64,000 bases of DNA from Penicillus capitatus (taxonomy: Eukaryota; Plantae; Chlorophyta). The position numbers and the translations under genes were made by a program. The stretch spans positions 243,527 to 307,526 of the forward strand of contig OZ287714.1 in NCBI GenBank assembly GCA_965649825.1, in the 5' to 3' direction. The notes beneath the pieces were generated by a model that was not told the DNA's origin, searched no databases, and saw only the letters and a program-made list of their open reading frames with translations. Of this stretch, positions 1 to 29,674 are shown one piece after another (the first letter of the stretch is position 1; every line of letters begins with the position of its first letter).

Positions 1-3000
1 CGACATTGAACGACAGCATTGGAGCGTTGCGTGGCTTCCAGTTCTGGATGAGCTGCCAGTCCTGGGCAGTAACATCGAAGGCGAAGTCGGCAGGCGGTTG
101 CAGACACACGACAAAGCTCATCTCTTTTCCAGTCTCTGTGACAAACACGATTCTGTGTTCTGACTCCTTCAGCTGCTTGACCTTCCAGGTCATCTGGAAT
201 TCTTGTTCGCTGCCCTTTTCGAGATAATACTCCTCTTGGTCAAAATGAAAATATTCACTCTTTGGTGGATACACTGTGACAGCAATCTGTTTGTGCACGA
301 GGGTATTAGCCGCTGTGAGGCACAGTTCTTTGCCATCTTCACTCTCTCTTACGATAGACGCCAGCTTCTTAGGATCGACGCTAAAGACGACCTTCTGCTT
401 TTCGAAAGAGGGTGTCGGATCTTGCCAAGATGCATTGATTCGTAGACCCCGAGATGCAGCTCCTTCGACAAAGATCTTGAGCTCCTCGGTGTGCTGGCCT
501 TCTTTGTCATGGCTGATGGACAACTTCACGGGGTATGTCTTCCCCACGTCAACTGTCCCACGCGAAAAGGAGAGCTTTACATTTCGACTGTCTGTTCGGA
601 GTTCAAAGACAACGGGCACTTGGCCGACATTCTTGATCTGGAAAGCGCGACGGGCTGTTCGCCGGACTTTGATATCTGAGAGATACCAGGTATCATCGAT
701 TTTTCGATGACGGTTATCAAACAGTTCGAAATGGGGCTTCTTTATCTGGACAGTGAGCGGCAGGTATCTGTAATTCTGCATGGCGCCTATGACAAGAAAC
801 GTTTCGACTGACTCTTCCTTCAATCCCGACTTCAACCAGACGGTAAAGGGTCTCTCGTTCCCTGCTTGGAGAGTCATGCGTGATTCCTCCAAGGACAGAG
901 AGCTGGTAATGCGCATGTGCTGGATCTGGGATTTGACGAGAACGGGCAGAGTTGTCATGTTCTTGACAGACACAGAGCGTTTCTGCGCTTCAGATGCAGT
1001 TCGTACAACTCCGAAATTAATCTTCGACATGCTCAGCTGAATGGCTAGTCTCTGAATGTTGACTTTCAGAACAAATGTGGCATCCAGCTCTTTATCGCCA
1101 GAGGTTATGCACCACGTCTCTCGTATCTCTCCATGTGCAGAGTCTTTGAGTGCGAACTCCAGATTCTTCGAAGCCTCGCCAGCTAACTGGATATTCTCTG
1201 TGGCTCTCAAAAGAAAGCAGGCGGCGTTAGAGTCTTCGGGTGTGATTTGGATCTGCAAATTGAAAGAAGATCGATTGACAATCTCCATTGTGTAGACACG
1301 GGTCTGTCCATGCTTTTTGCTAAGGTCTTTGGCATGTAAGAGAGTTCCAAAATCGATCTCCTTTCTTGCATCGCTCAGAATCAAGCCTCTACTCTCCGAA
1401 TGAATGATAACAATCTTGGGAATGTTGCTGAGGTTCGTTTGGGAGAGGTATTTTGGAGTGTGATTTCTGCAAGTCCCTAGTTCCCTCTTCCGTTTGACGA
1501 GGTCGGAAAAACAGCCAGACCACTGCACTTGTGCTTGGGCAAGTGCTTTAACAGCCTTCAACCAGTTGCTTGTCTTGAATTCAATGAGATCCTTCTCTCC
1601 GTGCAGTAGACAAGATTGTTTCATACGACTGATCAGCTCTAACTGCTTGGTATCGAACAAGTCGAGTCTTCTTTCGGTTGGAGATCTTAGACAGTCCAAG
1701 CATGAACGACAGAATTCATCCAGATAAGAATTCTGCACTGCCCTTCGACTGAAGACTTCCATTTTGATAACAATGGATTGGATCTCTTCAAACGCTTCTT
1801 GCACCTTAGGCGACCAGCCTTTTTTCGAGCTCGAGGTGGAAGGACAACTGGATTCGCGTGTGCTCATTCTCCAGGTGGAAAACTGAGAACGCTTGGCGAC
1901 TGCCTTGGCTAGTGCACCTGCTGCTTGTTCGATTTTGAAACGGTCGTGAACAAGAACTTCATTGGCTTTATTGAAATTCCTTATGGCAGATCTCCATTCT
2001 TCCACTTGGTGAAACTGCTTACGAGCTTGATGATACCACTGCATCTCTTCAACTTGTCGAGAAGGAGGCAGTTGCCGAAGTGCATAACGATCCCGATATC
2101 CGTATTCAGGGACGTCCTCGAGAGATCTGCGATGCTCCTCTCTCTCGAAGTTCTCCGCTAAGCATCTCATGCGGTTCGTGTAATCCAGGATACCCCCTCG
2201 GGATGATGGTTCGTAACCTGTCTCTGATGTTTCCAGACTCACGTAGATCGCCTTGGTGTCAATCGAAAAAGTAATGCTGGGACCATGATATTCCATTGGT
2301 TTGCACTCGAGGTTGGTGTAATCGCTTTCCAACTCCTTCATTGTGTAGCGCTTTCTGTATTCTTTTCTTCTTTCGTTGTAAACCACGGTCAATCGAAAAG
2401 ACTCATCATCATTGACGTCGTACGAAATCTCTTTGTTCTCTGCGGAATAGGTTTGCAGCGAGACGTGGTGCACGTTTCCAGCAGTGACGCCATTCTCGTC
2501 TGCATAGATCTGAAAGAAAGTGCCTGGGTTTGTTATGCCGATCGACAAAATGCTCAAAGTGATCTTGACAACCTTTCTCCTCAGAGGACCATAATCTAAA
2601 GGGGCATCTGTCATATTGACTCTCTGTTGCCGAGAAGTCTGCCCACGCTGTTCCCGTTGCACCCGTTGCGCCTTTTGTTGCTTTGGGCGACGTTTCATAA
2701 GCATTTCCAGATAGCTGCTCATGGCGACGAAGGCATCCAAATTCTCAAAACGCAAACGGTCTGGCAGATTCTTGGACTGGGGTCCAAAAAGCCTCCATGC
2801 TTGTTGATAGCAATCAAACATCTGCTCTGTCGAAAGAGTGAGATTGTCATCGTCAAAGAACGCAGTGGACAGCCTTTCTTGCATTTGCCAGCCTGTGTCT
2901 TCTACCATGAGATGCCTCATCAACGGTTGGTTTTCGATCAATTCATCAAATCCCTTCTCGCAGGTCGTGTACAGTTCTTCAAACTTCTCTGTGAGATGCT

Positions 3001-6000
3001 TGACATTTTTTCTCAAGTCGTCGACATCCTCTCCAATCTTCGCCGAATAAATAAACATGTCTTTATGAATGCCTGCATACAGACATCGCAAGATGGCGCA
3101 TGCTTCATCAAGAACACCAACTGTTCCTTCTTTATTATCATTCTCTGGTTGGAGCACCAGCTCTGCGGGTTGCTTCATCAACTGACTGTGTGCATTAAGG
3201 AACACGACACTCTTTTCAATCAGAGTTCTGGATGATTGCAGCACGCTACATGTCTTCCACCATTCGAAAAGCTTCTGTCCCGCAGATGCTGGGAGTTGGT
3301 TTACTAGGAGGGATATTGCGTGCAACCGGTCCATGAGTTCTCTGTCATTGAGTGAGCTAAGACCAGCTGACCCCTCTCCTTTCACATTTGGAGGTTCTTT
3401 TTGGAGATGCAAAGGTTGCAAGAACTGCTCTAAAGGCAACCGCGTTATGCTACCGGCACCGGACTCGTCTTTCTCACAGTTCGAGGCCACTGGGTCGACG
3501 TCTCTTTTTGATTCTCGGAGAGATCGCATGCAACACTCAGCGCTTTCAAACCACCAGTGATCCAGTGCTCTTGTCAAGAATTCCACGAGAAAAGGACCAG
3601 GCCGCTGTCGGTGTCGAAGCATCACTTCTGTCAGCTCGGAGAACTGTTCCTTCAGCTCCTTGAATACATCTTGCATCTCGTTTATTTGGAGGGACAGAGG
3701 TCGCTGTCGACAGGCTTCGAGCAGCACATCTTTGACTTTTAGCAGAAGCTCTTTTTCCTTCTCTTGTCCTGAACAGCTGAACATTCGAAAATTATTTATT
3801 TTCTTGACCATGTCTCGCATTCCCTGGATAAACAGTCGAGATGTGTAGGAGACGGAGGCGTACAGATGTCCATATTTCGTCAGGAAAGTCTCGATATTCC
3901 ACAAAAGCTCAAAAGGATCTGCCAGAAATTCATCCACTGTTCTTTCTGTGGAAAGGAACCAGTTATGCCAGATGCATTGAACCGACTCAAATACGCGCCG
4001 CAATTCTGGTGCATCATTCAGTGGCAGTGGTTGAAAATGACCTTCCTTTTTGGCCTCTTGAACCCTCGGAAGCAACTTCATTGTGTACAGATCTGTTTTT
4101 TCGATGCTGTCTATCTTTGAACAGCAAAGACTGACGGTGGACAGGATCAGGTTCTGTGTGTAAGCTGCAGATGCGAAGGCATCTGGTTTGCCGATGCAAC
4201 GCTCCTTCCATTCCCTATATTTGCTTTCGTCCTCCAAGAGATCCACACACAGTTCCCGGATTCCACCATCATTCGCCGCAGGACCTGTGCAGGCCTCTCG
4301 AAGTGTCTCCCACTTCTCTCTGAGCTTTTTGGAATCTTGATGCGGACTGTTTTGGTTTTTACTGAATTCCAGACTTGAGGCCGTGCGAAGGAGATACAGA
4401 ATGCGTTCATTGCCAATCGAGAGCAAAGTACACACGTCTTGAATCGCTTCTCGCACAGGATCACCCTTTTCGAGGGAACACAGGTCTTTTGTGCAAAAAT
4501 CTTCAAGTTTTTTTATCCATCCATTCAACTTGTTTTCGACGGATCCCTCGGGGGATGGATGATCCTTCAGGAAATCATTCGCCTGCCGTCCAACTTCCTT
4601 GCAGACCTCCCCTGCGGCCTCTTGGTTTGCAGCTGTCTCTCCATTGAGCATCTCGTGGAGTTCTGGCAAATCAGTTCCCAGCATTGACTCACACAGGTCT
4701 AGACCTTTGGTGGCTAATCCTTGAAATCTGCTCGACAAGTCTGCGCACAAATCCATCTTTCGTCTGTCGATTGCGTTTTTATTTTCTTCTATCTTTATCT
4801 GTAAATTCCTTAGATCTTTTTTTGTATCATCTAGCTCTTGTAGGGAGCGGATAACGTCAGCCTGGCAATGTTGTGAGAACATCGTTTCTGACATAGGATA
4901 TCTTTGGTACTGTATTATCCTCTCTTCCAGTCTTCTTTGGTTTTTGAGCCGAGTGCTCCATCCTGCATCCAGATCTGCTGCTCGTTTTTGAACTTCCTCT
5001 TTGGATGACAATCGTATTTCCTTAACAAATTGAACGAACTTTGTACGAGACAGCCAGACGGACAGCCAGACGAATTGGAAAGCGATCACGATTTCTCGAA
5101 CGATTGGTTGTTTGTCCTGATCCTCGATGCATCCCAGAAACGAATCCCACTTTCCATCTTTAAGTGCTTCAACTGCAGTGTTCATTTTTTCGGCGAAATC
5201 TCTAAAGATCTGTGCTTTGGTGCCGCGATCAGTCAACAATGCATGACGCGCCAACAGTCCTCCACTCCCATCGACATCCAGACAAGCGGATTTTCTTGGC
5301 TGGTGTGTGATACAGTCATGGGCGACGCTTCTGTTAAAACTGAAAATGACTGCAACATCGTCTTCCGTGAGCTCAGGGCATAAGAATGAGAAGTTTGCAC
5401 TTGCCATCGACGAATGCGAAGCAAGGCGTGTTCTCAGTTTTGCTGCATGCTCCCTCAGTTTCTCAAAGGTCGAAATGGCTTGCAGCACCGTCAGCGTCTT
5501 TCCAGAACACATGTCGAGTAGACCGATGATTCCATTTTTTATGTCCTCAGCTCGCCACGCCCGCAGCAGTTCACGATATGGTCCTAAGAGATGTTTAGCT
5601 TTCATGCTGATGAGCTCGTCGACAGCTGCATGGATAAGAACATCGTGTACCTCTTGTTTACTGGCTTCAAAAGTCAACTGCAGCTCCAGTTTGTCAGAGA
5701 ATACATGCAGCTGAGATAATTCAGTGACCCTTTTACTCTTTTCCTTTGGATCCTCCGCCTTTTTGTAACACCGGATGATTTCAGCTGCTTTCTTCGATAG
5801 AGCTTGATGTTGACAAGACTGCATCCATGACATCAGCTGTTCCAAGAACTTTTCGGTATCTTCTGGTCTCTCAAGTTCCTCTGTCAAGCACTTCTCTAGA
5901 TCGTTCATCGGATTCGTGTTCGTCCAGCCACTTTCAGCAAAAGTGGACGGTAAGTTATTCACTGGAGCGAAGGAGGATTCTCGCAGACAGCTGTCATACA

Positions 6001-9000
6001 TTATGCTCAACTCTTTGCTTTCTTGTGCCACTGAGAAGTGTTTTTCACTGTCCTCATTCAACATCGATCTATTCAGATCTTGAAGATTGCCCAATTTGTC
6101 GCCGTATCTGTCCAATGTATCCATACTGCACGTTGACGGGTCCAGCCTATCCAGTTCCTTACACGTCTTGATGGCTTCCCTCATTATGGTGGCAGACGTT
6201 TGCTGGGGGCTCTTCTTCGCTTCTTGCCACAGACTTTGATACTTGCTCTTCAGGGTGCGAATCTCATACTTGTATCGGTCCAACTGTGAACTCCATCCTG
6301 AATCGGGCCTACTCCTCATCAGATTGACATCACTGTCACCGAGTAGATTGCTGTCTTTTATTTCTTTCAGTTGCGCATACATACACTTCATTTCACCGAA
6401 TACATCATTCAGACCATTTCTTTGCAGCAAGTCTTCTGAAATGCCCAATTCTTTAATGAGGCCCGTGTATCTCTCTTTCCAGGTATCAAATATGGCAAGC
6501 TCTTTCTCTTTGTCGAGAACCATGACATCCGAATGGCTCTGTTGCAAAAGTCCGACAAAGTAGTCAACTGCTTCTGGCAGAAATTCAAGCATACGTGAGA
6601 ACTTGGAGCAAAGATTGTCGTCTCCAGTGTCCAATCTGGTAGCTGCGTACTGGATGATGAATTCTTTTGCTTTAAGGATCGGTTTCAGGAAATCCACTGC
6701 TTCGAATACGCCTTCAAACTTCTTTCTGATGATCCTGTCCAGTTTGCTCATTTCGTTCACAAGATCTCGATCAGGATGGTCTTTCAGTCTCTCGAAGAGA
6801 TCATGAAATCCGTATGCGATGGACGTCGATCCCCAATCAGACGAAGATACCTTGCTTTCAATGAAGCTCAGCTGTTCTCTGACAGCATTCGTCCCTTGTT
6901 TCTTCCGTTCTTCATTGAACTTCTCGAGGGACGCCGTCAATCTCTTACGGCACTCCGGTTTCATGTGTTCTCGTTGGACTTCTCTGAGGCAGGTGTCGAC
7001 GGTTAGCGTATCACACAGCAGGGTGGTCTCATCAGTTCTCTGTCCCAGTGACTCCATCCGGTCTTTATAGACGGTCAATAGTTCTATCATTTGTGTTCGC
7101 AAAATACTTGTTCTCTTATCCACTTGTCTGTGATCCGCCGATTGACATCTGTGCTCGATCAGTGTACGAAGACATGACATCAGGACAAGCCCCAGGCTGG
7201 ACATATTTCCTTCAACGTTCTCCCAGACGATCAGTTCTTCCTTTCTCAGGTGCAGTTTGTCACCATGAACACCTTTCCATCGCAGCAACCATTCCTCTTG
7301 TTGAGATACCCTTTCGTCTGTCCGAGGACAACAGTACAGACAGAGTTGTTGGCATTCTCTGTTATCAAATACGACGAGCGCCACTAAACCATACAACGAT
7401 TCACAGCAAGACGGGTCTCCAATCAGAATAGCCGCTTGCATGCCGCCATCTCTAGAGAAGTGTTCATGCTTTGCTGTTTCTTCGTCGCATTTCAGCAGTT
7501 TTAGGGGGACATCCGAATCTCTCTCGCATTCGCAAAACAGCGAGATCCAAGTCAAGCAAAATTCACTGTTCCGAGTGCTTGTCGAACATGCGTCGAATCG
7601 GAATCCAATTTGATTGGACACAACTTCACAGAGATTCCATTGAATTGGGGCTTTGGACTTCTTCCTCTCAGCCAGAAGGTCTTCAAGAACTTGAGAATGA
7701 AACTTCACAGCATCGTCCAGATCTTTACACAATGTCGCCTCTGAACCCGGCGATCTGACAATTGTATCCAATCTCTCGAGGGCTGCTGAGATTCTTAGAC
7801 CGGTGTCTAAGGATGTCGCCTGATGACTACTGTGTGACGATGAAGGAATGGCACTTGAGATCGGATGTGCGTGAAGTTTGCTGCCTGAGCCATACGCATC
7901 TGACCAGAATGGTTCGTCCTCCTCGCGGCACAAGATCTTGTATCGCATCTTCCACATCTCTGTCACGAGTCTCGCTCGACTGATCAGTATTTGGAGTTTG
8001 AGCACTTCTCCAGCGGAGAACTGTGCTCGATGCATGAGAACAAGGCGTTCGTGCAGACGCAATGATGTCTTCCAGTCGAGGACAACAAGTGAGAAACACA
8101 ACACCAAGTGGTTTTCCTCTCTCTTCGTGATACTTGAATCCCTCAGTGCTGTGATTGAATCCCTCAGCCTCGGGCCTGAGTCCGTCACTTTCTTGGACAG
8201 CTCCTTCTGCAGTGCAAATTTTAATGCCTTGTTCTGACACCGGTTTTGCAGCTCATGCAGAGAATTGACACTCTTTGTGAAGTACTCTTTCTCAAATGCA
8301 CGGAAGTAGTGAGTCAGGTGTCGTATACAGAGCAAACTCTTGGCTTTTTTCATCATACTCGGAATCTCTAACTCCTGACAATGTGGATTTCCATCCGCCA
8401 ATTCTATCAGCGAACGAAGGACTTCGTGTGTGTCTTCCAGAAAGCTCCTTCTTTGCTGCCAGTCGGAGAATGTGGAGTTTGACATGAGCTCTTTGTACAT
8501 GGCAATGAGCCGTTGCAGGTTCTTGTTGACGTATTCGTTGACTGTCATCTTCCTGGTTTCGCTGATTTGCTCCGTGATTCTTCGCAGTTGATGACATCCG
8601 TGCGTTCCGCAGTGTGCCCGAAACTTCCTCATGTCGGCATGACAATCGTGGAGATGGTTCTGGAGTTCTTGACAAGCCTCCTTCTCTTCCGGATAGATCT
8701 TTGTGAACACCGTATCCAGAAAGGACTTCATTGCTTCTCTGAATTCATTCCTGTTTTGCACTTTCAGAAACTGTGTCACCAACTGCTCCAAGATGACATG
8801 AATGAACGACGCGAAAACAATTCGGAGTTCTCTGGTCTCTCTCTGGAAAGGCGTGAAGATGCGTTTGTCTCTTCTTTCGGATAGATTCACAAGAGACAGA
8901 GAACGCGCCTCTCTGCATGACTGCAACATCGCTTCGTACAGCCATTGCAGATCATCGGTTTCCTTGACAACTGCAGCATACGTCCTCCAGAGACCCCATA

Positions 9001-12000
9001 CGACAGCAGTGAACAGTTGTTCACCGCGATCCAGCCAAGTCCGAGCAACGGATATTGCTTGCTTCAGAGTTCGGAAGGTGATGGATGTGTCTTTCAACAC
9101 CATCAGCTTCGATGTCCGCACATTGTTTCTCACTTGGGCGTGAAACAGTGCCGACAGTAATGCAGCGACGTCGCCACCGGCATGAGATCCCAATTGCTCT
9201 GAAACAATGTCGACAATTTCGTGCCTCTTCAGCTCGTTTGTTTTCATCTCGGATACATCACCTACAATGAAAAGGGTTAAAGAAGATAAAAATTCAAGAC
9301 CGCCCTGCTGCTTACTATCGATCTCTGGAAGCCAGATCTTGATCATTCTGTTGAGCAAGGGGTTTGACATTTTATAGGTGTTGATTCGCTTCCTATCTGC
9401 AGCAGCGAATATTCTGGTCTCTGGGTGAATGCCACTCGCACGAGTCAACACTTTTCCATCCGAGTGTTCGTAGAGGTTAAGACTTGGGGTTTCTTCGAAC
9501 AGAGAAAGAACTCTCTCGATCACATCTGGCGGCGCAGCATTGATGTCGTCGAAGAAAACAAAGTGTCCAGATTCGAGGGCTTTGATGAGGTCGGCTTCGA
9601 CGAAGGTGAAGACGAGTCCTTCTGGAGAATCCACGTTCGATCTGCACTCGTACTCAAGCAGCCGGAATCTGCGACGGAATTCTGTAGATCGTTTCGATTC
9701 TCCCTTTTCCAGCACGACCATCAGGTCATTCAGTCTCTTTACTGTGTCGCTCAGTGTATCTTCATTTCGGGCACTTGCTGCAGGCATGTACGCCCATCTC
9801 GCGCTCATGAAGAATTCCCTTTTCAGCACCTCGTCATTCCAACTCTCGGTCATTTTCATACCATGGAGTAACATTTCATCTCTCAGAAAGAAGATACTCT
9901 GCTTCAGTTTCTCCGAAATGGTTTTGGGCGAAAGAGGCAACCATTGTCCAATCAGGTTAGAGACTTCGCAGTCGCGATGCAGAGAGAGCACCAACAGCGG
10001 TCTTCCTGTGAGCAGGGCCAATTCTCTGACAAGGGCTGTCTTCTTGGAACACGTTCCACCCTCGAGCAGCACCGTCCTTTGTGACTCGCACGCGGAAGCT
10101 AGCAAACTCAGCTGCTTTACGGTCCTCTCTGAGTGCACCAGTGACCCAGATGATGACAGTCCTTCTGTCCTGTCCATGTAGACACATCCGATACGCACAA
10201 CGTCTGCCACAGATGCATCGATCGTCATGCTGCTCATCTCATCGGTATCGATGCAAGGTGGCGTCACAATCCGATCAATGATGTTTTGGACTTGATCTTG
10301 AGCCTCTCGGCTCTCGAAACGATGTTTGAAGACAAGTTCCAAAGCACTGCGAAGAACGAGATCGACAATGGCAGATCGATCAAACTCTGATTGCTCCATA
10401 CCATCGTGCTCACGCCACTTTACTTCATAGTGAGAAATCTGCGCTTCCACATTTCCTAACATAATGTCCCGAACAGCAACAAGGTCTCTCAGATTGAACT
10501 TATGTCTTCTGTAAGTTCCCTTCAATGTGCCAGACTCAACCAGCTGCGTTACTTCTCTGTACACACTGAAAATCTGCTCCACGATTTCCTTGCGCACAAG
10601 GGTTTGTCTTTCCTTCGCCGTCATCGTGCTGAAGATGACATCCAGTATCTCAGAGAGCTCATCATCCGACTGACTTTCGCAAAACACGACTGTGAAGAGG
10701 TTCTTGAACGATCTGGCCAGTTTTACGCGTCCTCCGCCTTCGATTGCAGGGTTCATTGTGGCAAACAGACGAATTCCCTTGACCTGCATGCGTCCAGATC
10801 CTGCCTGTCCAGGAATGGCAAAGCCGTTCTCGATAGCAGATCCATTCAGCAGCGGAATAAGGGACTCCAGCACCTCGGGGCGCAGAAGATTGATCTCATC
10901 GAGCAAGATCCATTTTTTATGCGCGAGAGCTGAAAGCAGTTTGCCATTTCTCCATTCGAATGTTCGGCAGTTGTTGTTATATACAGGCACAACAGAGCCA
11001 AAGAGTTGCTCGATTGTTGTGTCCCTCGAACAATTGATGCGTTCGAGATCTGTCTTCATCTGACGAGCGACTTGAATGACAACAGCCGTTTTGCCTAAAA
11101 ACGGATGCGTCGGCGAAAGATTCGGAGTTTTGTAAGAAGACGCTTACCAATTCCGGGCTGGCCTTCCAACAGAAGTGGGGAGTCTGTGTTGATGGCGGCG
11201 AAGATCAGGGCCATGTTCTTCAAGACGGTTCTGGTCGAGCAGAATGGTACGTCTTCCTTTTGTTCAGTCAAAGGCTGTCGTTCATCTAGGGATATTTCTA
11301 AAGAGAGTTGAGTTCCTGTCAGAGAGACGGTCATTTTGTTGTCATGCGTCTTGATGCAAATGGGATTCTCGCTCTTCTCCGGCATCTCAAAATGCATTTG
11401 GCAGTAGTCTTCCTCGAAGCACTTCTTGAGCATCTTATCTTGCATATCAAGTGAATATCCGGAGAGATAGAAGAATCTGGCACCCAGCATACATCTCTCC
11501 TTGACACTCACGTTGTCTGGATGATTCACGATGAAATTGGTCCATCGCAAAACTCTCCTCACATCTCTGCTCGATTGTTCAAAAGGGCCTTCTGTCACCT
11601 CCTCGTGCACACGCCGAATCATCTTCCTTAAATCTTTGATGTGTGTCTGATCTTCATTGGACAGGTCGTGCGTCAGTTTTTCTTTGACAATTGACAGGAC
11701 ATCTTCGAATGTGTATGAAGGGACATAAATCTGAGTGATTCTGCTCTTGGTGGCATCACTCAATCGTGGCTTTTTCGTTGAGGATTCTAGATGTACGGTG
11801 GCAATGAAGCTGTATCCTTCTCTTGGAATGTCCAGCTTTGTCGTTTCTGCTCTGCAGGACAAAATGTCTTCAGGGATAGAGAATGTCGGATCGATTTCGA
11901 GAGCGCTGTTCAGCCGTTCTGTAACGGACTGAGGACACAGGTCATAGTCCTCGACGACGAAAATATGTTTCATTGTGATGGCCTTCACGAATGGGCCATC

Positions 12001-15000
12001 TCTGAAAAGGAAGATTGGCCCGTGATCATCGAAGCTAGTCTTCGCCACGTACTCTTTGAGGAGCTTCAATCGTTTCAGCAGTCTCTCAATCGCAGGCCTG
12101 TTGCCATCATTGATCTTACTTGCCTGATCAATGAGCTGATCAATGGATTCCAGCAATACCGACGGATCGATACTGGGTTTATATTTTGTTTCAGTGTCTG
12201 GCTCATTGATCGCTGTCTGCATTCCATCCGTCTCTGCATTCATGGTAAGAAGACTTGTACTGTGTTCGTCCTTCTTGGCCACTTCTGCTTCCGGCACAGG
12301 CTGATCGTTGTCACGTACTCGTTGCTGTTCGAGACCTATGGAAAAGTCGTCATACTCTGGTGTTCCCTCACTTCCTGAGTTGTCGTCAGGGATATCCTCT
12401 TTTGATACACCTTCATCATGAAGAGCATCCGGAGATGGCACAGCTGCGGATGACACTTGTCCACCCTCTGCACGAGAAGAACTTTCTGCGAAAGTTATAT
12501 TCTGCTGTCCAGCAATGTTGCTTCTGCTCTTGTTATCCTGGACAATATCTCTAAGATGTCTCATCGAAGTCTGGATGCTTTCGATTTCCTTTCCCAATGC
12601 GTCTTTGTCGTTTCTTTGATCATCCACATGTGCCAGAATGCAGTCGCCGGTTGTGATCAGGACGTCCAATATGTCAACGACGGATGTCAACTGCACCTGA
12701 CCAATCAACTCCGTAGCCTCCGAATCCGAAGTCAGATGCACCATCTGCACTTTGTCTGTCATTCCAGAGATCTTGAGCCATGTCTTGATCAGCTCAGTCT
12801 TAAACCCTGCTTCGCCCCACAAGAGGACGGGTTCCTTTGCTTTGAGAGCAAATGCCAACTCAACGAGCTTGTCCTTAAACACTTTTGGCGGTTCGACTCT
12901 CGAGTCACTTTCTCTCCACAGTGGACTGTTCTTCAGCTTGAAGTTAGGGAAGGAAACTGATAGTGGTCCATGCCTGAAGATCACTTCAGACTCGGTCTGC
13001 TGAATGTTTTTGATCATGCAACGATCATTCGTTAGTGTTCCGGCATCGTCGGGGAATGCTTTATCCAGCAGAGGATACAGTCTTTCCTGTTGTTCAACAG
13101 TTGTCATCGGCTGGAGCACGGACATGGCAACAGCTTTCCAAGAGAACTTGTTCTTGCTCTCGTCTCGGAAAATCTTGAATCTACGGACAATTTTTATCAA
13201 GTCTCTCATCGTGAGATTGTATGCGCCAGCTGATTCGAAGTAGAGTCGTGAGAGTGCCTTGGCATCTTCTTCCTCGACAAGTCCTTTGAATTCTTGTTTC
13301 TGGAACCTTCTGAAAATGATGTCAGAAAATTCGTTCTCTGGGAAATCTTCAACGGTGACTTCAAGGAAACGATTACGCACGGTGATTGGCAATAACTTTC
13401 TTCCATTTCTGCCACCGTGAAACGGATTCTGCGTTGCAAAGAATCTGAATTCTGGATGGACTGTCACAGCAATATGCGTTCCTGGAATCCGGACGACCCG
13501 ATCGCCTTCCAAGAAAGGCATTAAAGCAGCTGTGACGGAAAGAGGAGCAAGATTGAACTCATCGGCCACAAACCAATCCCCACTTTCCATTGCCTGGATT
13601 AGGATGCCTTTTGCAAATGCAAATCCTGAGCTCGATGGCATCCAGGTTCCAAAGTAATCCTGCAGTGTGGTCGTTTCGCTGTTATTCAACATTTTGACTT
13701 GGTGATGGCGTTGGCGAAATCGTCTCAGGCCGTGAATCAAGGCTGTCTTTCCGACAGCTGGTTTTCCTTCGAGTAGGACGGGTGTGTTTGTACGGACACC
13801 CAACAGAACAGCTTGCGCATGGGTCTCTCTCGAGTCTGTCAATACCAGTTCTGGGTCAACGTCGACATCCTTCAGCAACTCCAGACGGTTGAGAGCATCA
13901 GGTGGACATCCCATTTGTGTGAGAAGATCCTCTCTCTGCTGCAGATCTTTCATCGGATAGACAAATACGACAATCAATGCACAATGAAGAGCATCCGTAA
14001 TATCTATCCCTTCGAACTGTGCGATTAAGATCGTTGCAATGTCCAGCAGCTTGACAAACTGTCTGAAAATGATACTGGATTGTTGGCATTTGTTGAGAAA
14101 CTCTCTGATCTTCAAACAGTAGGTACAGATGATGTCGCAGTCTTTTTCAAAGCTCTCGGAATCCTTTCCAGTCAGACAACACTTAAGGATGGATTGCAGC
14201 GTTCTCTTGAATCTTTCCGACTGTTGACCCGGGTCTTCAACATGAACGGTGATGAAACGATTGAACAGAGCAGCTGTGAGCTCTTTTGACAAACTGTCAT
14301 AGCCTCTGGATGCAATGCCCTTTGGTGTGTAAGTGGCAATGAACTGAAATCCTGTCGCAGGGCCTGGCTCATCGGACATCTGTCCATCTCTTGTGCGACG
14401 ACAGCACAAAGGCTTAGTGTCTCCTCTCTCTGTTAGCCACAGAGCTTTCGGCGATTCCAGTACAGGGTTGATTCGCTCTTGAAGTACAGCTTCTGCTTGG
14501 CCAATGTTGTCGACGATGAAGACACTTCCTTCGATAAAGGACTTTGTCAATGGGCCGTTTCGCCACTCCACTGTGTATTGCTGATCATTCTTAACTGGAA
14601 GGTGTTCTCCGAGCATCGCCGATGGTTCACTCTCTGTTGTCAGTGTGACCTGGGCGTATTGATTTCCTAAGAGGAAAGCAATCGCCTTTCCCAGGCATGT
14701 CTTTCCAGATCCGGCACGTCCTTCGATTAGGATCGGCCGTTCACTCCGGAGAGCGGCGAGTAAGTCAATCAGGAGCTGACAATTATGATCATTAAGAGCT
14801 GTTGGCATCTCTGGCACGATGGATCTCATTGGCTTGACTGCGTCTCGTGTCACCTCACATTCCCTTACGAAAATGTTCATGACTTGTTCTCTTGCCTTCT
14901 CGTGCCTCAAAGAATAGCAGTAGAGTTCAGCTCCTAGCTTTCCCAACTGGACGAGCGAATCCAAGCTGAAGATGTCCTCTTTCACTGCTTCGGCGATCCA

Positions 15001-18000
15001 CTTCACCAGCCAAAACTCAGAGAAGGACGTGTACACTCCATAGTCCATCATGAAATCTGGTTCAGTGATCGTCTTTTGCACTTCCTCATGGATTTGTATA
15101 CACTTTTCAAGCGCACCACGGGTTTCTTCCGACAGAGCAGTTTGGTGTGGAAAGTGGACCTTCCAGAATTCTGCCGCATCAATATCCATTGTCCTCTTGT
15201 TCTCATCTCTCAATTCGGCATACGCTTCTCTCACACGCGTGACCTTATCAGAAAGAGAAGAGCTGTCCACATTCTCATCAGAAGGAAGTAAATGTTGTTG
15301 CTCCAACAGTTTTCTGATGATATCGCGTCCATCTGATCTGAACCGACATCCGTAAATTAACCAGGCATAGCTTCCCAGTTTTTCGTCTGTTTCTGGAAGA
15401 CGGTGTTCTGTCGCAATCATGTCCGTCCATGTCAACAACTCGCGGTTTGTGATGGTCGTGTATGCCTCGACCTCGGTACACCGTTGTTCAATAGCAGTTC
15501 TGGCTTTGCAGTGAAACTCTGTCATGTTCTCAGCCACTCTCAAGAGCGGCTCGGAGTTCTTCTCTCTCAATGTCGCGATGCTTAGCTTTAGCTTCACAAT
15601 CTCTTTCCATTCCTCTTTGGGAAGCTCTCTGAAGTTCATGATGGAGAACTGCGAAAAGAAGGCAGTGCTCATGCGTTCTCTCTTTCCTGCTTGCCATGGA
15701 TTCTGTGTGGCAAACAGTCGAAACCTGGGATCCTTCTTTATGACTCTCGTGGCTGCATCTGCTGCACTCTGATCGCTCAGAACAATCTCTCCCCTTTCCA
15801 TCGCATCCGTGATGACCTTTAAAGCGCCTTCTTCTGCCAAGTTCATCTCATCGAGCAACACCCAATCACCATTTTGGAAACTCTTCGAGAAAGGTTGCAA
15901 TGTGAAATCCGGAACATCCCCTGCGGTTATGGATAGTTTGCCCAAGAAATCATCAGGTGTCAAATTTGACGACATGTTGATGCGAATGAGATCGACATGC
16001 TCCCGTTTTGCAATCTCCATCAGGGTCGCCGTCTAAAACATGACAATCGTAAGATGCTTTTGATTGCATAGAGCTGCACGATACTTTTCCGACGCCAGTT
16101 GTTCCGATCAACAACACGGGAGATCCATCGTCGATCTTCTCTTTGATCATTCTGATGTTCTCTTCTGTCGTTTCTGTTGGTATAAATGCGCCCTGCGTAA
16201 GTTCACCACTTGTCAATCCGATGCTGCAGTGCCTTCTGAGTCCCACTCGTCTACCCCTCTTGAGAATAGCCTGACGCATGGAGACGTTTTCAAGGTTCGG
16301 GGTTTTGCTCTTAAAGGTCGTGATGAGCGCATCCAGATCTTCAATGGATGCTTCTCCGGCTTGAATATCTTCTCCTTCGGGAAATTTTGCCGAAGAGAAA
16401 GGATTGAGTTGATACGACTGCGGCACATCAACACTGCTCACTTCGACCTGCTTCTCACGTGATCCTTTGTTTATGACAAAGCGGACAAGTTCCTTCAATG
16501 TCTCGGAGTCTGGTCTGTCTTCTTCAAGAAGCTCGAAGATTCTGTGCAGAATGGGTGCCAGCGCATGGCAAGAAGCATTCCTCTGCGATTGCGGCAGTGT
16601 CTTTAGATACTTAAGCAGGTTGTCAAAAAACTTGACTTCCTTAGAAGCGTCAATTTGATTGACACAGTTGAGAAACGTCAACAGGAGGTTATCCAATCGC
16701 CTTGAGTCCTCCTCCTGATTAAAGAGAAAGATGTCTAATAGTTTCTTAAACCCCTCCTCAGGCATCTCCCCGTGCACAAGAGTTTCGGGGGTCAGCATGA
16801 GAGTATTGACAACATGTGACTTCCAGTGGCAATCCATCAGCAAAGCCAGTTTGTTCAGACAATCTCTGGCGATGTCTGCAAAACCTGGCTGACTGACTGC
16901 GACGTCAATCAAGAGTTGGCAGACAGTTCGGCACACGGTGTCGTCATCGACCCTTGCCACTGCCGATGATCCTCCAACTGTTTGGAGACGCATTCGAAGG
17001 GCCTTTAATGGCCACTCGCAGAATCTAGGATTCATCTGCGACAAAACTTTGAGCAGATCGCTAGTATCCTCCATGTCTCCTTTCATTGCCCAGGTTCGAA
17101 GCATGTCACCAGACCCTGCGGCGTCAAACAGCATTCTAAAATTGTTGGCGTTCTGTGATGAGACTTTCAAGAAAGAAGAAAAAACAATGTGGGAAGTATG
17201 TTGTTGACAGTAATGCATGATGCTGCGGAATGCAGGAAATACAGATTCGCCTAGTTCCCAAACAAACAGAAAAACTTTGCAGACATACTCGATAAGACTT
17301 GTGTTAATGACAAAGGTATCCACAAAACTGCCCTCTCTTTCAAAGAAAAAAGACAAGAACACCAAACGCTCGTGTAACCAACCCCGATTATGTTGAGACG
17401 TACATTCCTTGCTCACAAAACAGTCTATACAGGATTTGAAGAACAATGGTGGAACAAACTTCGGGTCACTGTTCTCGACAAGGAAGGCTGTAAGAGAACG
17501 AACTTGATCATAAGATGGCTCATTGCCTCGATAAACGACAGGGGAAACAAAAAAATACTCAACAGTGGAAAGCACCAAACAGCGATTCATTCTCAGATTC
17601 TCTGTAAGCTTGTCGCAAAGAATCTGAAATGCATCTACTTCTTTCGAAAGAGTGACTTCCAGAGCTGCGTGAAGCTGCGTCTTAGAAAAATCGAATGTGT
17701 CATCATAACAATTGACCAGATTTGCGAAAAAACAATTGATGGCACTTGCAGACACTGCGCTTCTCAAGATGTGGAAGATCAGGTCGTCAGGGCGACGTCT
17801 GGGACCAACGTCTCCTCGCTTTTTGTAGTCCGTCTTGTTGTCTGACCACGTGACTGTCGTGGGATAGCCGACGGATAGTTTCTCGCAGTTCTCTGGCACC
17901 ACTTGTCTCGATGTCACTTTTTTGATGATGAGTGGATTGAAGAACAGCTTCATCAGTTCTTCGGATCCGAGTGCCATTGTCCATGAATTCAAAAGAGTGG

Positions 18001-18616
18001 AATTCTCTTCGGCATCGCTGACTGCGCCGGACAGTTTCCGCAGGTGAAGGAGAGACAAACTCAGCAAACCGATCACCGCATCTGTTTCCTGGCCGGCGAG
18101 TCCGATGGATAGCAAGTTCAGGAGCATGCTGATACTGGGCTGCTCTCTTTTGGATGTCGCTCGTGGTAGATGTTTAATGTTTGTACGTGGGTTTGTTATT
18201 CTCTCGACAGTGAGTTGTTCCGCATCGAATTCCTCTTCGCGGAGCAGTAGGCGAAAGGTTGAGTCGTGCCTTGCTGGATCAATCGAGTTCAAAAACCAGT
18301 GAATGAATCGCGCTAACTGACCGCAGATGCACTTCCTGGCTTTAAAGACTCTCACCGAGTGGGCTTGAATGATACAACGACCCAGGTGATATATGGTTTC
18401 TGGCTTGAGAAGGCCAGCGTTGGCAGTTTTTTCTTCTTCTTTCAGTTGAATGATGGAATCGACGATTTCTCGTGTTTCTTCGTAGTCGTCGAGTTCCTTA
18501 CACGAAGAATCCGCCGTCGAGCTTGCCGTCGCAGTGGAAGACGATTCTTCTGCTCCATTTCTTCGCAGGACGTTGAATAACGACTGCAGCAAATGCTTCT
18601 CTCGCGGCGACGACAT
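1..18616 (-). CDS. Giant midasin-like six-AAA+ protein (>=6,150 aa, 3' end outside window): ARM-like N-terminus, 6 AAA_5/MoxR-type modules, long helical linker, tandem Ig-like/ASH domains
   Basis: Manual splicing joins ORF 15953-18616, ORF 11095-16020 and a stop-free frame from 11094 to base 1. Exons are 18616-16085, 16032-11148, 11094-9316 and 9261-<1. GT-AG introns are 16033-16084 (52 nt), 11095-11147 (53 nt) and 9262-9315 (54 nt); removing the first two restores the Walker A motifs GTTGVGK|T and GQPGIG|KT. Walker A/B pairs: GTTGVGKT/WVLLDE, GRAGSGKT/VFIVDN, GKPAVGKT/WFVADE, GEAGFKT/IFVVED, GQPGIGKT/WILLDE, GGTCSKKT/FVFFDD. Midasin-style FRLFATQNP and RMS/KL-FFSQF/RNRF sensor-I and R-finger motifs are present. 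Confidence 0.88.
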
Positions 18617-19639
18617 TTGGACCTAAGATTCACACACGCGTCAAAACATGACCACCCGAGTTACACTAAAAAAATCTTTCTGTATGTTTAGAAAGAGAGT
18701 AGCAAAGATTGTGCTGTAGTTGCCGCCGCCAATGCCATTAAACGCGCAACAAAGAGTGTACGTGCGGCGAGACGTATATATCAAGTATAGTCGCCAAAGA
18801 AATCATATGGTGTACCGTGTCTCTTCTGGAGACCAGCTTCGGCTGCGTGTTGTCCACAAAGATACAAAGTCGACTTCGCTTTCGTCGAGCGAAGAAGGGC
18901 TCTTTTTACACAGTTTCGGGTCAGCTATCACCTGTCATGTCATTGACCGGTTTCGTGAAGGCCTATCATAGACAATCAACCAACACATTCGGCACATGAG
19001 TGACCGATATGTGTTGTCATGCCTTGTTTCTTCTTCTTCCTGTTCAATCAGTCACACACACGTTACCATCACCAGACTGCTTTCAGATAGCGCCCATGGG
19101 ACATTGATCGCAATCTATGGACGATCTGATTAAACTAATCAGTGTCTCCATGCATCGAGGATCATTTGCATTGCATTTCGATCTCTCTCTAGAGATGTTC
19201 AATGCATGCCCTTAGATTTCAAACTTGTCTTTTTGCTATCCTTGCGCTCATTCTAACGGCATTGGAAGAATCGCTTCTCGAATTGTTACATCATCCTGTT
19301 TTCGGCAGACAGTGACTGGCCATTCGGACCATGATTGACTACACTCTCTATTCATTCGAAGATGCTTGAATTCAATGCTGCATGCAACAAACGTGTATCG
19401 AATTGCTGCTAGACTTCTACATTGTCAGTGTCGTCTTTCTCATAGTTTCCTTGAGTCACACACGGGGAGTCGATCGGTCTATCAAATCCTGTATCGTCCT
19501 CGCGGCAATGCCGACGACGCGTCAGCTCTGGTGCAAATAGGCCAATCATCCGAGCCGCATTTCACGAATCATTCTTGTAATTATTAATGAAAGCACCTTC
19601 GCCTTTCCAATCAGGCACTTCTGAAAGGCGACGTTTCTG

Positions 19640-21892: not shown

Positions 21893-24706
21893 TCATTCAG
21901 AACACAGATGGCCACTGGTCCATCTTAAAATGCGACTGGGATGCTGGTAAGATTTTACAAGACCCTCCCATTCGGCCAATTTTGCACGGACTAAGGGGAT
22001 GGTTTCTCCGTCCGATGTCTCTTCATCCTCGTCGTCGCAGTTGGAACTGGGTTCTACACTGGACTCAGGTACTCCTCTACTAGGCGTATCTGAATCGACA
22101 GTTGCCACTGCAGCAGCATCAGCATCTGCAAGGGGAGCAGATTCAGTCGGTCCGTCCATCATGCACATTCCGAAAAGTGAGTCCACCTCTGTCTCATCGC
22201 TCGCATTTTCGCTTGTACTGCTATCAAAGTCCATTCCTGTCTTTGTTGAGTTCTTGTTCGACTTACGTCTCTGTGAAGAGCTTTCCTGTTGTTGTCCAAC
22301 TGCCAGCAACTGCTTTAGTTGATTGAGTGCATCTTCATTGTTGGCTTCCAGTATTTCTTTTGTCTGTCCAAGCAGATTACGTGCATCTTCATATGATTCC
22401 ATCAAATGCTTCATGCATGCGACAATTCCATCAAATTCATCCTGCAGGCTCTTGCGTGCGTGAGCGCCGAGCCCAACTGTGGCCTTCCGGCCAATGAGAT
22501 TGCGCAAAGCTGAAGCAGTGAGGGGCTTGCGGCCATTCATGATTTCTCTGCAATGCATGCATTTCTGCAGATCTGTGTAGCGAAAAGCAGGGAGTCCATG
22601 ACTCTTGGCTGCAGTCAGCTGAACATTGTCATTGGAAAAAAGCACGACAGGGAAACAGAGGGGGTTTTTGGGATTGGGAAGTAGTTGCTGTTGTTGTTGA
22701 CCGCTGAACTGAGGTTCTTCAGAATGCAGCCGGAACTGACTGGCGGCTTGACACAGCTCTTGCTGAAAAAAGAGTGCCACCTCAACGATCTTGAGATCAA
22801 TCGCCTGGCCCTTGTTAAACACGTGATGGCTCCTCGAATCCAACACTTCGGCATTGCGATCCACGATGATACCTTCTCCTTCATGAGCGCCGAGAATGGT
22901 CAGGAAGTCCTGTCCGGCTGGACCGTATTTCTCGAGACCAGAATTCACCAGCTTTCTCACACAGAGTCCGACATGTGCGCTGTGCTTCTTAAGTCCGTCC
23001 AGTTGTTTCATCACACTGTCACACAGAACAAAGAAAACACGCTCATTTGCAGGTATGCATCTTCCAAAATTGCCTCTTTGGCAAAGGCTGTCCAACCAAT
23101 CGAAGCTCAAAAAAGGACAGCTACCCGCCTTTACTTTACATCCAATCAACCCCAACAATGCACTAGTGTCAGGAAATACCAATAAAGGACCGCTGGAATT
23201 ATAGACATCTTGGGGTTTATAGTTAAGCGCCTTCTTTACTTGACAGGGCGCAGAACCCGAAGAAGGATCCAAGCAGTGACCGAAATTTGAAACAGAACCA
23301 ACAACACACTGCTTTGCTGAATTGTTTGTATTGTCCTGCCAACTGAACTTTGCTTGCATCAAAACAGGTGCTTCAGATGGTCTCAGTCTCTGACACTGGA
23401 TCCATGGTAAACGCAAATGTGCAATCTTGCGCTCATTTATCAAACAGCTAGATGCCTTTCCTCTTGAGCGACGCAAGTGGAATCTAGGTATGTCGACGAC
23501 GGCACCTTTCTCTTTCTCGATCGCCGAGATAAACTCTTTCAGTTCGTCGTGATTGATCATGTTCCATTCCATTCTGAGCCAGAACGGTTTGCAGGTCGCC
23601 TCTCTGGTCGACACAGCTGCAGACATGATCTGTTGGGCTCCCGTGTTCGTCATCGAGTTGTGGGAGACATGAATTTCCAGAAGCTCGTCGTTAATCAATT
23701 GAGCAATGTGCTTTGCTCCAGAATCTGTGATCTTGTTGTCGAAGAGCCACAGTTTAACGATGCTCAGCACAGATGCGTTCTGCTTGTGCCATTTGGAGAT
23801 CATGTCCAATTCGACATCTGTGAGTCCCATGCGCTCGCATCGCAGAGAAATGCAAACCTTTCCCTTGAAGAATGAGCATATGCGATGGTGATGCCTCGCA
23901 GCAGCAGCGGAAGCAACAGCAGCACCAGATTTGGATCTTTGTCTGGTACGTCCATGTCTCCGAGGACCTTTATCTCTTGTGATGCTGCCGCAATTGCTGC
24001 TTGGTATTGTTGTTGGCGTAGGTAGAATTGGTGCTGTTGTCGATGACTGTCCCTCTGCTGTCGACTGCAGGTTGTCAGATGACTGCTCAATTTGGTGATG
24101 AAGCCCGTCAGCTGTTTCATTCAAAGAACAGGTGCTACCAGATAGACTCTGTTCTTTGTTTTCTGAGGAGAAGGAGTCGACAACGTTGTTGGACTCCTTA
24201 GTCAGGTCCAAAAGGGCATTTTTATATGCCAATGCCCATTCCAGTATAGCATCTAGCCACAGGGGAGAGAATCGACATCCAGGGACGGTCATCACCTATG
24301 TGGTCAACATCTGCCATCCTCATATGCTCGGAGTGGCGTCAGTGGATACCTTCCAAAAACCTTCCTCGACGTCCCTTTCGAGCAATACCTGACCACACCC
24401 GCTGCCGAAAAAATAGCGACAGTTGAGGTTGCCTGCTTCTTTCCATCTCCGTAGCCCTTCACTTGGTCTCCACGGTTTTACGAAACAGTTGGCGTTGCTG
24501 TTCTCAGGCGGCGATGACCGTCCTTTTCGGCGTCGTGGCAGCCCTCTTCGATTTTGACAACGGCGATTGTTTTGACGCTCTTCGGCGCCGAGAGCCCCAT
24601 TTGCAGATTCTGAGCTGCATTTTTCTTTGGGACTCTGGTCGTTCTTTGCTGCTTTTGTTCTGGAGCCACGGCGGTGTCGACTATTCCAACCACCTGGCGC
24701 GCTCAT
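21893..24706 (-). CDS. RNI-type LRR + PIN (PIN_4/SWT1-like) domain protein
   Basis: The 800-aa ORF 21893-24295 contains LRRs (IVKLWLFDNKITDSGAKHIAQLI, LLEIHVSHNSMTNTGAQQI, FWLRMEWNMI) and PIN motifs (LLVFPDTSALL, SVMKQLDGLKK, AIDLKIVEVA, VVLFSNDNVQLTAAKSHGLP). A probable first exon starts at MSAPGG (24706) and is joined by a ~54-nt GT-AG intron ending at catag (24296). Confidence 0.7.
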
Positions 24707-29312: not shown

Positions 29313-29674
29313 CGACTACTGTTACTAAGTGGATCGTCAAGCAATCTTCTCATGCTTCTGGTGGCGCTGGATGATCATGACAGCCCATCTGCGCAATCGT
29401 AGAATGTCTTTTGAAGTACTGACTCAAGCGCATGTTCTAAGGGACACGCCTCTCTCTCACACACAGGACAATGCGACCTGCTGACGTTATGATGGCCTTT
29501 TGTTTCTTTCGACGTTGAACACTGCTCCACTTTAATGTGACTTGACTCTGCATGCATGCGATGTTCTGTTTTCGATGATGTTGTTGTTGTCACTGTCTGT
29601 CTGACGTCGGTCCTCGTCAGAAGGACGACAACGATTCATTCGCGCAGAAGTACGTTAATCATTCGTTAGTGGGG

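Follow-up and report, generated by a model that had tools for sequence, protein, structure and literature searches.

What kind of machine is encoded by a gene whose product carries six ATPase modules in the order of midasin and is nearly twice midasin's size? Midasin (MDN1 or Rea1) is a ring-shaped motor protein by which assembly factors are removed from immature ribosomes; it binds the ubiquitin-like (UBL) domains of Ytm1 and Rsa4 (WDR12 and NLE1), acts in 60S maturation and is normally encoded by a single gene per genome. The gene in question occupies the left end of a 64,000-nucleotide stretch of contig OZ287714.1 (positions 243,527 to 307,526, forward strand) from the green alga Penicillus capitatus (assembly GCA_965649825.1), hereafter the window, whose coordinates are used throughout. 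It lies on the minus strand and runs past window position 1. We propose, from sequence comparison, that this giant and its relatives form a distinct deep branch, an undescribed sister family of midasin that lies outside the canonical MDN1 clade. No midasin paralogue or midasin-like giant has been described in the literature that we searched.

One reading frame, followed to its stop codon

The gene model is built from three long open stretches of the minus strand (18622..15956, 16032..11098 and 11143..2), which two GT..AG introns of 52 and 53 nucleotides connect in frame. The resulting spliced frame (18616..1) comprises 18,511 nucleotides and 6,170 codons with zero stops, and its C-terminus is incomplete in the window; the one giant spliced frame claimed in an earlier note on this DNA is thus what is seen. 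The third stretch, 3,714 codons long, continues past the left window edge, and by our own calculation the probability of such a frame staying open by chance is about (61/64)^3714, or roughly 1e-77. We place the start at the ATG at 18616, the first downstream of the stop that opens the frame (just upstream of 18622). Both introns interrupt Walker A motifs, which splicing restores: intron 1 (16033..16084, 52 nucleotides) lies in that of AAA1 (GVGK|T), where joining the exons gives GTTGVGK|TATLMEI, and intron 2 (11095..11147, 53 nucleotides) lies in that of AAA5 (GIG|KT), where it gives GQPGIG|KTAVVIQ. Exon 1 (16085..18616) encodes residues 1-844, that is, an N-terminal region of about 805 residues and the first part of AAA1, ending at the Walker A lysine. 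A relative at locus L004 (Logan SRR33785046) has a 45-nucleotide intron (L004 9860-9904) at the same AAA1 Walker A codon position as intron 1, and a 47-nucleotide intron (L004 14681-14727) in the AAA5 Walker A, five bases off intron 2; another relative, P0128, has no intron at either place.

The remainder of the gene could be read from public data. Contig ERZ25074695 ctg340592_344x_l (6.93 Mb; ENA/NCBI) holds the same locus, with 99.4% identity to the window over the 18,616-base gene region (84 substitutions and 3 indels) and 99.58% over a wider 22.6-kb locus (L003). On this contig an open reading frame (ORF)-based caller had split the gene into products of 887, 1,621, 1,338 and 4,388 residues. 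When the final 1,200 residues of the window protein were used in an exhaustive HMMER search, the largest of these products was recovered (P0121, 100% identical over the query), and the missing C-terminus was thereby obtained. Everything said here of the part beyond the window is read from the DNA of this contig (locus L007), which contains two further GT..AG introns of 56 nucleotides each and in which the reading frame closes with a TGA codon about 6.7 kb beyond the left window edge. The composite protein has 8,377 residues and a mass of about 954 kDa, with 2,207 residues lying outside the window. In feature order, this minus-strand continuation holds the remainder of an immunoglobulin (Ig)-like array, a second region without Pfam match, the vWA domains vWA1 and vWA2, intron 3, vWA3 and intron 4, followed by the stop codon. 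The leftward extension that the earlier note had called for in search of the C-terminus therefore did lead to vWA domains, three of them, each with a DxSxS motif.

Comparison of the two alleles bears on whether the gene is intact. The coding sequences differ by 50 synonymous and 33 non-synonymous changes, a ratio of non-synonymous to synonymous polymorphism (pN/pS) of 0.19. Relative to the window, the public allele carries insertions of a single T, 18 and 3 bases near positions ~7082, ~7258 and ~7511, respectively; the second and third are in frame, and the extra T breaks the frame and causes the split between the 1,338- and 4,388-residue products, the window allele being intact at this point. 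The one-base insertion marks a null allele or haplotype unless it is a mistake in the assembly; because the public allele has an open frame of 4,388 codons after it, the change must be recent if it is not an error. The gene is thus confirmed to be real and intact.

Collinear relatives occur in at least six other assemblies. The L004 relative has the same three-ORF layout (895, 1,570 and 5,642 residues) and aligns collinearly with the window protein over residues 52-5190 at 36% identity and 5564-5843 at 29%. Uninterrupted ORFs covering ring, linker, Ig array and vWA domains are found in P0128 (5,842 residues), P0122 (5,642), P0124 (5,553) and P0127 (4,766), and the relative at locus L008 (4,617 and 3,657 residues) likewise has all four parts; a more distant subgroup (P0005, P0008 and P0011; locus L010) retains the order of ring, linker and HYDIN-type Ig, and relatives are also encoded on two JGI metagenome contigs. 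The sole named member is GMH42204.1, a 6,477-residue "hypothetical protein BSKO_10123" from the green alga Bryopsis sp. KO-2023, whose C-terminal sequence, on reading, contains a fourth DxSxS motif after vWA3. Identity to family members is 22-40% in the N-terminal region, 45-66% in the ring, 20-33% in the linker, 26-36% in the Ig array, 16-26% in the second region without Pfam match and 37-55% in the vWA region. Judged from these alignments, the parts under strongest apparent constraint are the ring and the vWA2 domain. ORF-based gene calling has missed or split the giant gene, and existing annotation says only "hypothetical protein". We also note that a word-indexed protein search returned 115 matches, all of at most 1,579 residues, and that the gene's own 1,621- and 4,388-residue products were never among them; the collection searched apparently omits very long proteins, and the absence of a match there is no evidence for orphan status. 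Searches of it with the tail and with the linker, which gave no match even to the gene itself, are uninformative for this reason.

Ring, linker and tail in comparison with midasin

Pfam AAA_5 matches the protein six times, in four stretches of exon 2 (E 3e-45) and two of exon 3 (E 1e-24). A purpose-built hidden Markov model (HMM) of the AAA module likewise finds six modules, in agreement with the number put forward in the earlier note, and the P-loops fall at residues 838, 1282, 1600, 1917, 2468 and 2819. The Pfam family "Midasin AAA lid" is matched weakly. AAA1 (residues ~806-1100; 15265..16201, minus strand as for all modules, spanning intron 1) combines the Walker A motif GTTGVGKT with LLDE at Walker B, and AAA5 (~2438-2760; 10232..11253, spanning intron 2) combines GQPGIGKT with LLDE; both are predicted to be hydrolysis-competent. 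AAA3 (~1570-1880; 12925..13857), with GKPAVGKT and VADE, is the best-conserved module. AAA2 (~1255-1560; 13885..14802) has the Walker A GRAGSGKT and a degenerate Walker B, IVDN, with no glutamate. AAA4 (~1890-2420; 11305..12897) has a degenerate Walker A, GEAGFKT, and is split by a stretch of about 250 residues, and AAA6 (~2790-3120; 9152..10144), with the variant Walker A GGTCSKKT and the Walker B FFDD (DN in relatives), is insert-split as in midasin. The AAA4 insert (residues ~1990-2180, window ~12300-11700), which separates the Walker A from the module's second half, gives no match to the AAA module, is mildly acidic and apparently of low complexity; in the canonical midasin at locus L005, AAA4 is contiguous, unlike that of the giant.

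The pattern of motifs extends across the family. AAA1, AAA3 and AAA5 have the canonical Walker A GxxGxGKT and Walker B hhhhDE throughout; AAA2 retains its Walker A and has VDN at Walker B; AAA4 has a shortened Walker A (G..FKT) and the Walker B VVEDYD; and AAA6 has TCSKKT and either DN or DD. With canonical motifs in AAA1, AAA3 and AAA5 and degenerate ones in AAA2, AAA4 and AAA6, the giant family seems to run on alternating sites. In Rea1, the sites of AAA2 to AAA5 are functional, and AAA1 and AAA6 are without Walker B (PMC6286127). The hydrolysis-competent sites of the giant family are hence predicted to be AAA1, AAA3 and AAA5, rather than AAA2 to AAA5.

Sequence searches point to midasin, module for module. 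In a phmmer search of the PDB, the exon-2 piece matches S. pombe Mdn1 at E 1.5e-101 and S. cerevisiae Rea1 at about 3e-99, and the exon-3 piece matches Mdn1 at E 8.6e-62; only NorQ/CbbQ (~1e-5) come after the midasin chains. The best stretches pair like-numbered modules with those of S. pombe Mdn1: the P-loop of AAA2 with that of AAA2, AAA3 with AAA3 (111.5 bits) and the C-terminal halves of AAA4 with each other, and, in exon 3, AAA5 with AAA5 (65 bits) and AAA6 with AAA6 (28 bits). As yardsticks for canonical midasin, we used the gene at L005 6342-20067 (GCA_013332935.1; ORFs of 1,176, 914, 1,801 and 543 residues, with a D/E-rich tract and a single MIDAS) and that at L009 10001-24296 (ERZ25074310; ORFs of 1,431 and 3,620 residues). 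With hhalign, the family-ring profile aligns collinearly with the former at E 3e-79.

A neighbour-joining (NJ) tree was computed from 57 well-scoring AAA modules over 179 columns, comprising the odd-numbered modules and one canonical AAA4, with 200 bootstrap replicates. The AAA1, AAA3 and AAA5 modules of the giant family are each monophyletic at 100% bootstrap. Among the canonical modules, those of AAA5, from fungi, plants and unnamed sequences, form a clade at 98%, and those of AAA3, which come from animals as well, form one at 65%. The giant's own modules group with one another in only three of the 200 replicates. Since it is like-numbered giant and canonical modules that group together, the six-module ring was in all likelihood inherited from an ancestor shared with midasin. 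Mean module identity is 61% within the giants and 63-69% among canonical midasins, in contrast to 37% between the two groups. The modules of Bryopsis GMH42204.1 sit with the giants and angiosperm midasins sit in the canonical clade, and it is this placement of a green alga that makes a simple divergent-orthologue reading unlikely. The claim of a separate lineage of giant six-AAA ring ATPases thus survives comparison: with the giant clades at 100% and with between-group identity so far below that among midasins, the giants are placed outside the MDN1 clade rather than within it, and they differ further from canonical midasins in their active-site pattern and in their Ig repeats.

Outside the ring the resemblance to midasin fades. 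The N-terminal region is about 2.5 times the length of that of midasin. The roughly 840 residues of helical sequence that the earlier note had placed before the ring stand as to length (~805-840 residues); as to fold, the region gives a weak HEAT-type match alone (E 0.018) and no Pfam family at E<=0.01, and hhalign finds no similarity between it and the N-terminus of canonical MDN1 (probability 0.1%). The linker (residues ~3121-5650; 1562..9151, minus strand) contains no Pfam domain and is predicted to be mostly helical with a small beta insert. Here too the length anticipated, about 2,500 residues, which is longer than in midasin, is borne out, and of the helical or coiled-coil character claimed for it, helix appears in an AlphaFold model of residues 3120-4300 built from a five-sequence alignment, which is nearly all helix at low confidence (predicted local distance difference test, pLDDT, 54; predicted template modelling score, pTM, 0.34). 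A Foldseek search with this low-confidence linker model returned nothing at E<0.3. Neither the linker nor the Ig array nor the second region of about 1,200 residues shows similarity to canonical MDN1 by phmmer or hhalign.

The linker is followed by an array of ASH/HYDIN/PapD-like Ig domains (residues ~5651-6170 in the window, 1..1561, minus strand), which continues beyond the edge to about residue 6280. These last ~520 residues in the window, foreseen as beta-rich Ig-like repeats, match the Pfam families HYDIN_VesB_CFA65-like_Ig (39.8 bits; cut-off 25.5) and Cep192_D3 (32.8 bits; cut-off 27; two stretches), and reach 26.6 bits against ASH, slightly below the cut-off of 27; the relatives P0123 and P0125 give the same Ig-family matches. 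This type of Ig domain is common to the giant's tail and the cilium- and centrosome-associated ASH/PapD-like proteins HYDIN, CFAP65 and Cep192, which, unlike the giant, have no AAA ring or vWA domain. The match points loosely to partners associated with the cilium, the centrosome or membrane traffic, and to nothing firm as regards a ciliary location. Between the Ig array and vWA1, beyond the window, lies the second region without Pfam match, about 1,200 residues long and on the minus strand like the rest (L007).

It is the end of the protein that ties it most closely to midasin again. Three C-terminal vWA domains all score above Pfam cut-offs (VWA 47.2 bits, VWA_2 43.8 and VWA_4 29.9): vWA1 (residues ~7535-7720), with the motif DNSGS (ILIDNSGSM); vWA2 (~7905-8090), with DISVS (VLDISVSM); and vWA3 (~8145-8377), with DCTSS (VMDCTSSM). 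All three lie beyond the window on the minus strand; intron 3 (56 nucleotides) falls between vWA2 and vWA3 in feature order, and intron 4 (56 nucleotides) falls after vWA3, ahead of the stop codon. Seven family members, when compared, show no variation at the MIDAS residues (DxSxS, Thr and Asp) of either vWA1 or vWA2. An AlphaFold model of vWA1 and vWA2 has an overall pLDDT of 54, but values of 73-87 over most of vWA2. When this model was compared with the whole PDB by Foldseek, the top match was the complex of the human MDN1 MIDAS with the NLE1 UBL domain (8ql1; E 1.5e-8, TM score 0.61 on the target), followed by the Chaetomium Rea1 MIDAS (6qt8 and 6qta) and Rea1 on a pre-60S particle (6ylf), with NorD, integrin I domains and TRAP ranking behind. 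At the sequence level, phmmer gives no direct match between the vWA region and PDB sequences. With hhalign, the family profile of the vWA region aligns with the D/E-plus-MIDAS end of canonical MDN1 (probability 92%, E 7e-7); domain by domain, vWA2 aligns with the canonical MIDAS at a probability of 90% (E 2e-6, 32% identity over 128 columns), vWA1 reaches 56% and vWA3 has no match. The alignment of vWA2 takes in the segment directly upstream of DxSxS (EKKIFASRKGGGKSEYSVAIVLDISVSM in the giant family versus RDKIWLRRTRPARRECRIAVAVDDSSSM in the canonical MIDAS). The middle and most conserved domain, vWA2, is hence the likely counterpart of the MIDAS domain of midasin.

One part of the earlier note is not supported by these findings. 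It had described an overall architecture unlike that of midasin, with a different cargo-binding tail, from a sequence that ended before the last 2,207 residues; these residues hold three MIDAS-bearing vWA domains, and the closest structural matches of the first two are the MDN1 and Rea1 MIDAS. Because the tail ends in a MIDAS of MDN1 type, the midasin layout of ring, linker and MIDAS has been kept and enlarged, not replaced. Of the D/E-rich tract and MIDAS that together close a canonical midasin, the giant has the MIDAS, three times over, but not the tract: the maximum of D+E per 100 residues in the composite protein is 27% (around residue 7391), compared with up to 46%, and a sustained 35-44% over about 400 residues, in canonical MDN1 (L005).

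The balance of likeness and difference can now be stated. The giant shares with midasin the order of its six tandem AAA_5 modules, each of which is best matched by its counterpart there, as well as an AAA lid of midasin type, the splitting of the even-numbered modules by inserts, a long linker behind AAA6 and a C-terminal vWA with MIDAS, in which the segment before DxSxS reads KKIF..KK....Y in the giants and DKIWLRR.... in canonical midasin. Unlike midasin, it has about 8,400 residues instead of the ~4,400-5,100 of the canonical midasins compared here, an N-terminal region and a linker with no detectable similarity to their counterparts, predicted active sites at AAA1, AAA3 and AAA5 instead of AAA2 to AAA5, an AAA4 with a ~250-residue insert, and no D/E-rich tract. 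It also carries the inserted ASH/HYDIN-type Ig array, which is found in no midasin, the further ~1,200-residue region, and three vWA domains (four in Bryopsis) where midasin has one.

A last difference is that there are probably several giant genes per genome, as opposed to a single midasin. Between the window protein and the long representatives of the family, and likewise among the latter, sequences diverge by ~55-70%, and pairwise identity between lineages is 29-33%, with 42-45% for two closer pairs. P0128 and P0140 are 33.6% identical over ~2,000 overlapping homologous residues, and for each the contig listed is 944,726 bp long; as they overlap at this level on what we infer from the equal length to be one and the same contig, at least two paralogues in one genome are suggested. 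We also used synteny to ask whether the relative in ERZ26696514 is an orthologue or a paralogue of the window gene. Its phosphatidylserine decarboxylase (PSD) belongs to the same 90%-identity cluster as the PSD of the window (446 versus 445 residues), and its giant gene is ~30% identical to that of the window in the tail and stands in a different neighbourhood; no synteny was found between the two loci, the PSD gene lying 1.8 Mb from the giant gene. Three matches were looked up as candidates for a canonical MDN1 from the same sample, and all come from other samples: P0083 (a canonical midasin, GCA_013332935.1), P0017 (a canonical midasin, ERZ25074310) and P0106 (bacterial).

Candidate function and competing explanations

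With moderate confidence, and by analogy with Rea1, we suggest that the giant is a paralogous midasin-type remodeller with MIDAS-dependent substrate capture, and not a 60S factor. A paralogous machine acting on a non-ribosomal target is proposed because the family falls outside the canonical clade, because it differs from midasin in its N-terminal region, its active sites and its acidic tract, and because there are probably paralogues in one genome. In the studies of Rea1, the ATP cycle of the ring shifts its modules, the MIDAS docks on the ring, and remodelling of the linker pulls the ligand (PMC6286127; PMC11603028). Transposed to the giant, ATP turnover in AAA1, AAA3 and AAA5 would change the ring; AAA6 and the N-terminal region would pass this change to the linker, which would remodel in turn. 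The MIDAS of vWA2 would dock on the ring and grip an acidic residue of the ligand via its metal ion, and the stroke of the linker would detach the gripped ligand protein from a larger assembly. Additional docking or anchoring sites might be provided by the Ig array and possibly by vWA1 and vWA3.

Several points weigh against this proposal. The mechanics of linker and MIDAS are pure analogy, for a linker that has no detectable similarity to that of Rea1 and is modelled at a pLDDT of 54, in a protein that lacks a flexible D/E-rich tract. A loss of hydrolysis is predicted from the degenerate Walker motifs and not proved by them. The tree unites giant with canonical modules at modest bootstrap values, 69% for AAA5 and 56% for AAA3; it is an NJ analysis of 179 columns, in which fast evolution and long branches could push the family further outside the canonical clade than it belongs. 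Finally, the gene could have an extra upstream exon at its 5' end.

The most serious alternative is that the giant is the lineage's sole MDN1, a derived and enlarged orthologue that still removes factors of the Ytm1/Rsa4 type from pre-60S particles. A ring collinear with that of midasin and a tail ending in a MIDAS closest to that of MDN1 would both be expected of such a protein, and the three candidate matches for a second, canonical midasin came from other samples. We nevertheless consider it unlikely. The canonical clade unites plants, fungi and animals with the giant outside it, while a green alga groups with the giants, and 37% identity to canonical midasins compares poorly with the 63-69% found among them. 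The N-terminal region and the linker show no detectable similarity to those of midasin, and P0128 and P0140 suggest several copies per genome, which would be unusual for an essential single-copy gene. To our knowledge, moreover, canonical MDN1 is found throughout eukaryotes. The active-site pattern also differs from that reported for Rea1 (PMC6286127), and the D/E-rich tract is missing.

A second possibility is that the likeness to midasin is superficial and that the giant is a relative of another lineage combining AAA_5 and vWA, such as VWA8 or bacterial MoxR-vWA fusions, or else of dynein or RNF213. VWA8 consists of AAA_5 modules and one C-terminal vWA in ~1,900 residues; in it and in the bacterial MoxR and NorQ-NorD systems, an AAA_5 ATPase is paired with a vWA/MIDAS domain, as in the giant, and this common AAA_5 chemistry and AAA-plus-vWA logic speak for a connection, as do the NorQ and NorD entries among the lower PDB and Foldseek matches. 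These systems are, however, far smaller than the giant and are not collinear six-module rings of the midasin type, and NorQ/NorQD scores for the giant are at least 95 orders of magnitude worse than those of midasin (1e-101 for midasin, by far the best in the PDB, versus 1e-5 for NorQ). Size and six-module collinearity with midasin argue against placing the giant with VWA8. The dynein heavy chain and RNF213 resemble the giant in having a single-chain six-AAA ring with a long mechanical element. Pfam scans of all 8,377 residues gave weak AAA_7 P-loop matches, the dynein-like feature that could be cited in favour, with no stretch passing alone; they gave no tail, stalk, microtubule-binding or other dynein heavy chain family, and no RNF213-type RING, zinc-finger or E3 family. 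Together with the module-for-module match and the midasin AAA lid family, this makes descent from any of these lineages very improbable. As a side observation, the most distant type of match to an AAA3-AAA5 query is a bacterial protein of 1,025 residues with AAA_3/AAA_5 matches (P0106; L006 6001-9078, ERZ26693861 ctg138347_12x_c), which may be a prokaryotic concatenated MoxR-type ATPase, similar proteins elsewhere being named "MoxR-like ATPase".

That this is not one gene at all, but adjacent midasin-like ATPase, Ig-repeat and vWA genes read together, or a decaying pseudogene, is scarcely credible: a one-base insertion near 7082 does split the frame of the public allele, but the window allele is open throughout, the public allele is open for 4,388 codons past the insertion, pN/pS is 0.19, the same domain order recurs in unbroken ORFs of 5,600-5,800 residues in other assemblies, and the Bryopsis annotation has it as one protein of 6,477 residues.

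The reading of the giant as a paralogous midasin-type remodeller can be carried further, although we do so tentatively and would regard the following as a possibility that is on balance doubtful. The giants may constitute a small multigene family of near-megadalton motors derived from midasin, with active and inactive sites alternating in the ring and with several MIDAS domains and an Ig array in the tail; they would act on a non-ribosomal assembly, possibly a cytoskeletal, ciliary/centrosomal or cytoplasm-organising one, in certain algae including the giant single-celled Bryopsis. If this is true, dynein and midasin would be joined by a third functional class of concatenated six-AAA machine. 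The midasin gene is regarded as single, conserved universally and devoted to one task, and a conserved sister family would show that the midasin design has been re-used, in a variant with twice the size, other ATP sites, three metal-dependent gripping domains and an Ig array. The family would likewise offer natural variants for questions posed by Rea1, namely how remodelling passes from ring to linker, whether the acidic tract is needed, and which ATP sites are required. RNA interference is reportedly established in Bryopsis (PMC12961179), and since a family member is present there, the function is testable.

Neighbouring genes and a tandem array

To the right of the giant gene, the minus strand carries an 800-residue ORF with a PIN_4 domain (21893-24295), UCH fragments (24900-27079) and an mTERF gene (27086-28162). 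On the plus strand follow ORFs for an enoyl-CoA hydratase and a 3-hydroxyacyl-CoA dehydrogenase (29669-31291), probably one split gene, and an MlaE/TGD1-like permease with an N-terminal extension of ~135 residues (32304-33383). The PSD gene mentioned above lies on the minus strand at 43363-44700. Taken together, the neighbouring genes (19640-44700) suggest a plastid-bearing eukaryote.

The right end of the window is occupied by a tandem array (47672-64000), for which no Rfam match and almost no ORFs were found. It consists of at least 53 copies of a 306-bp unit with 96% matches, and it extends past the right edge. Its G+C content is 64%, compared with ~47% in the remaining window, and on the left the array is bounded by a degenerate copy of its unit.

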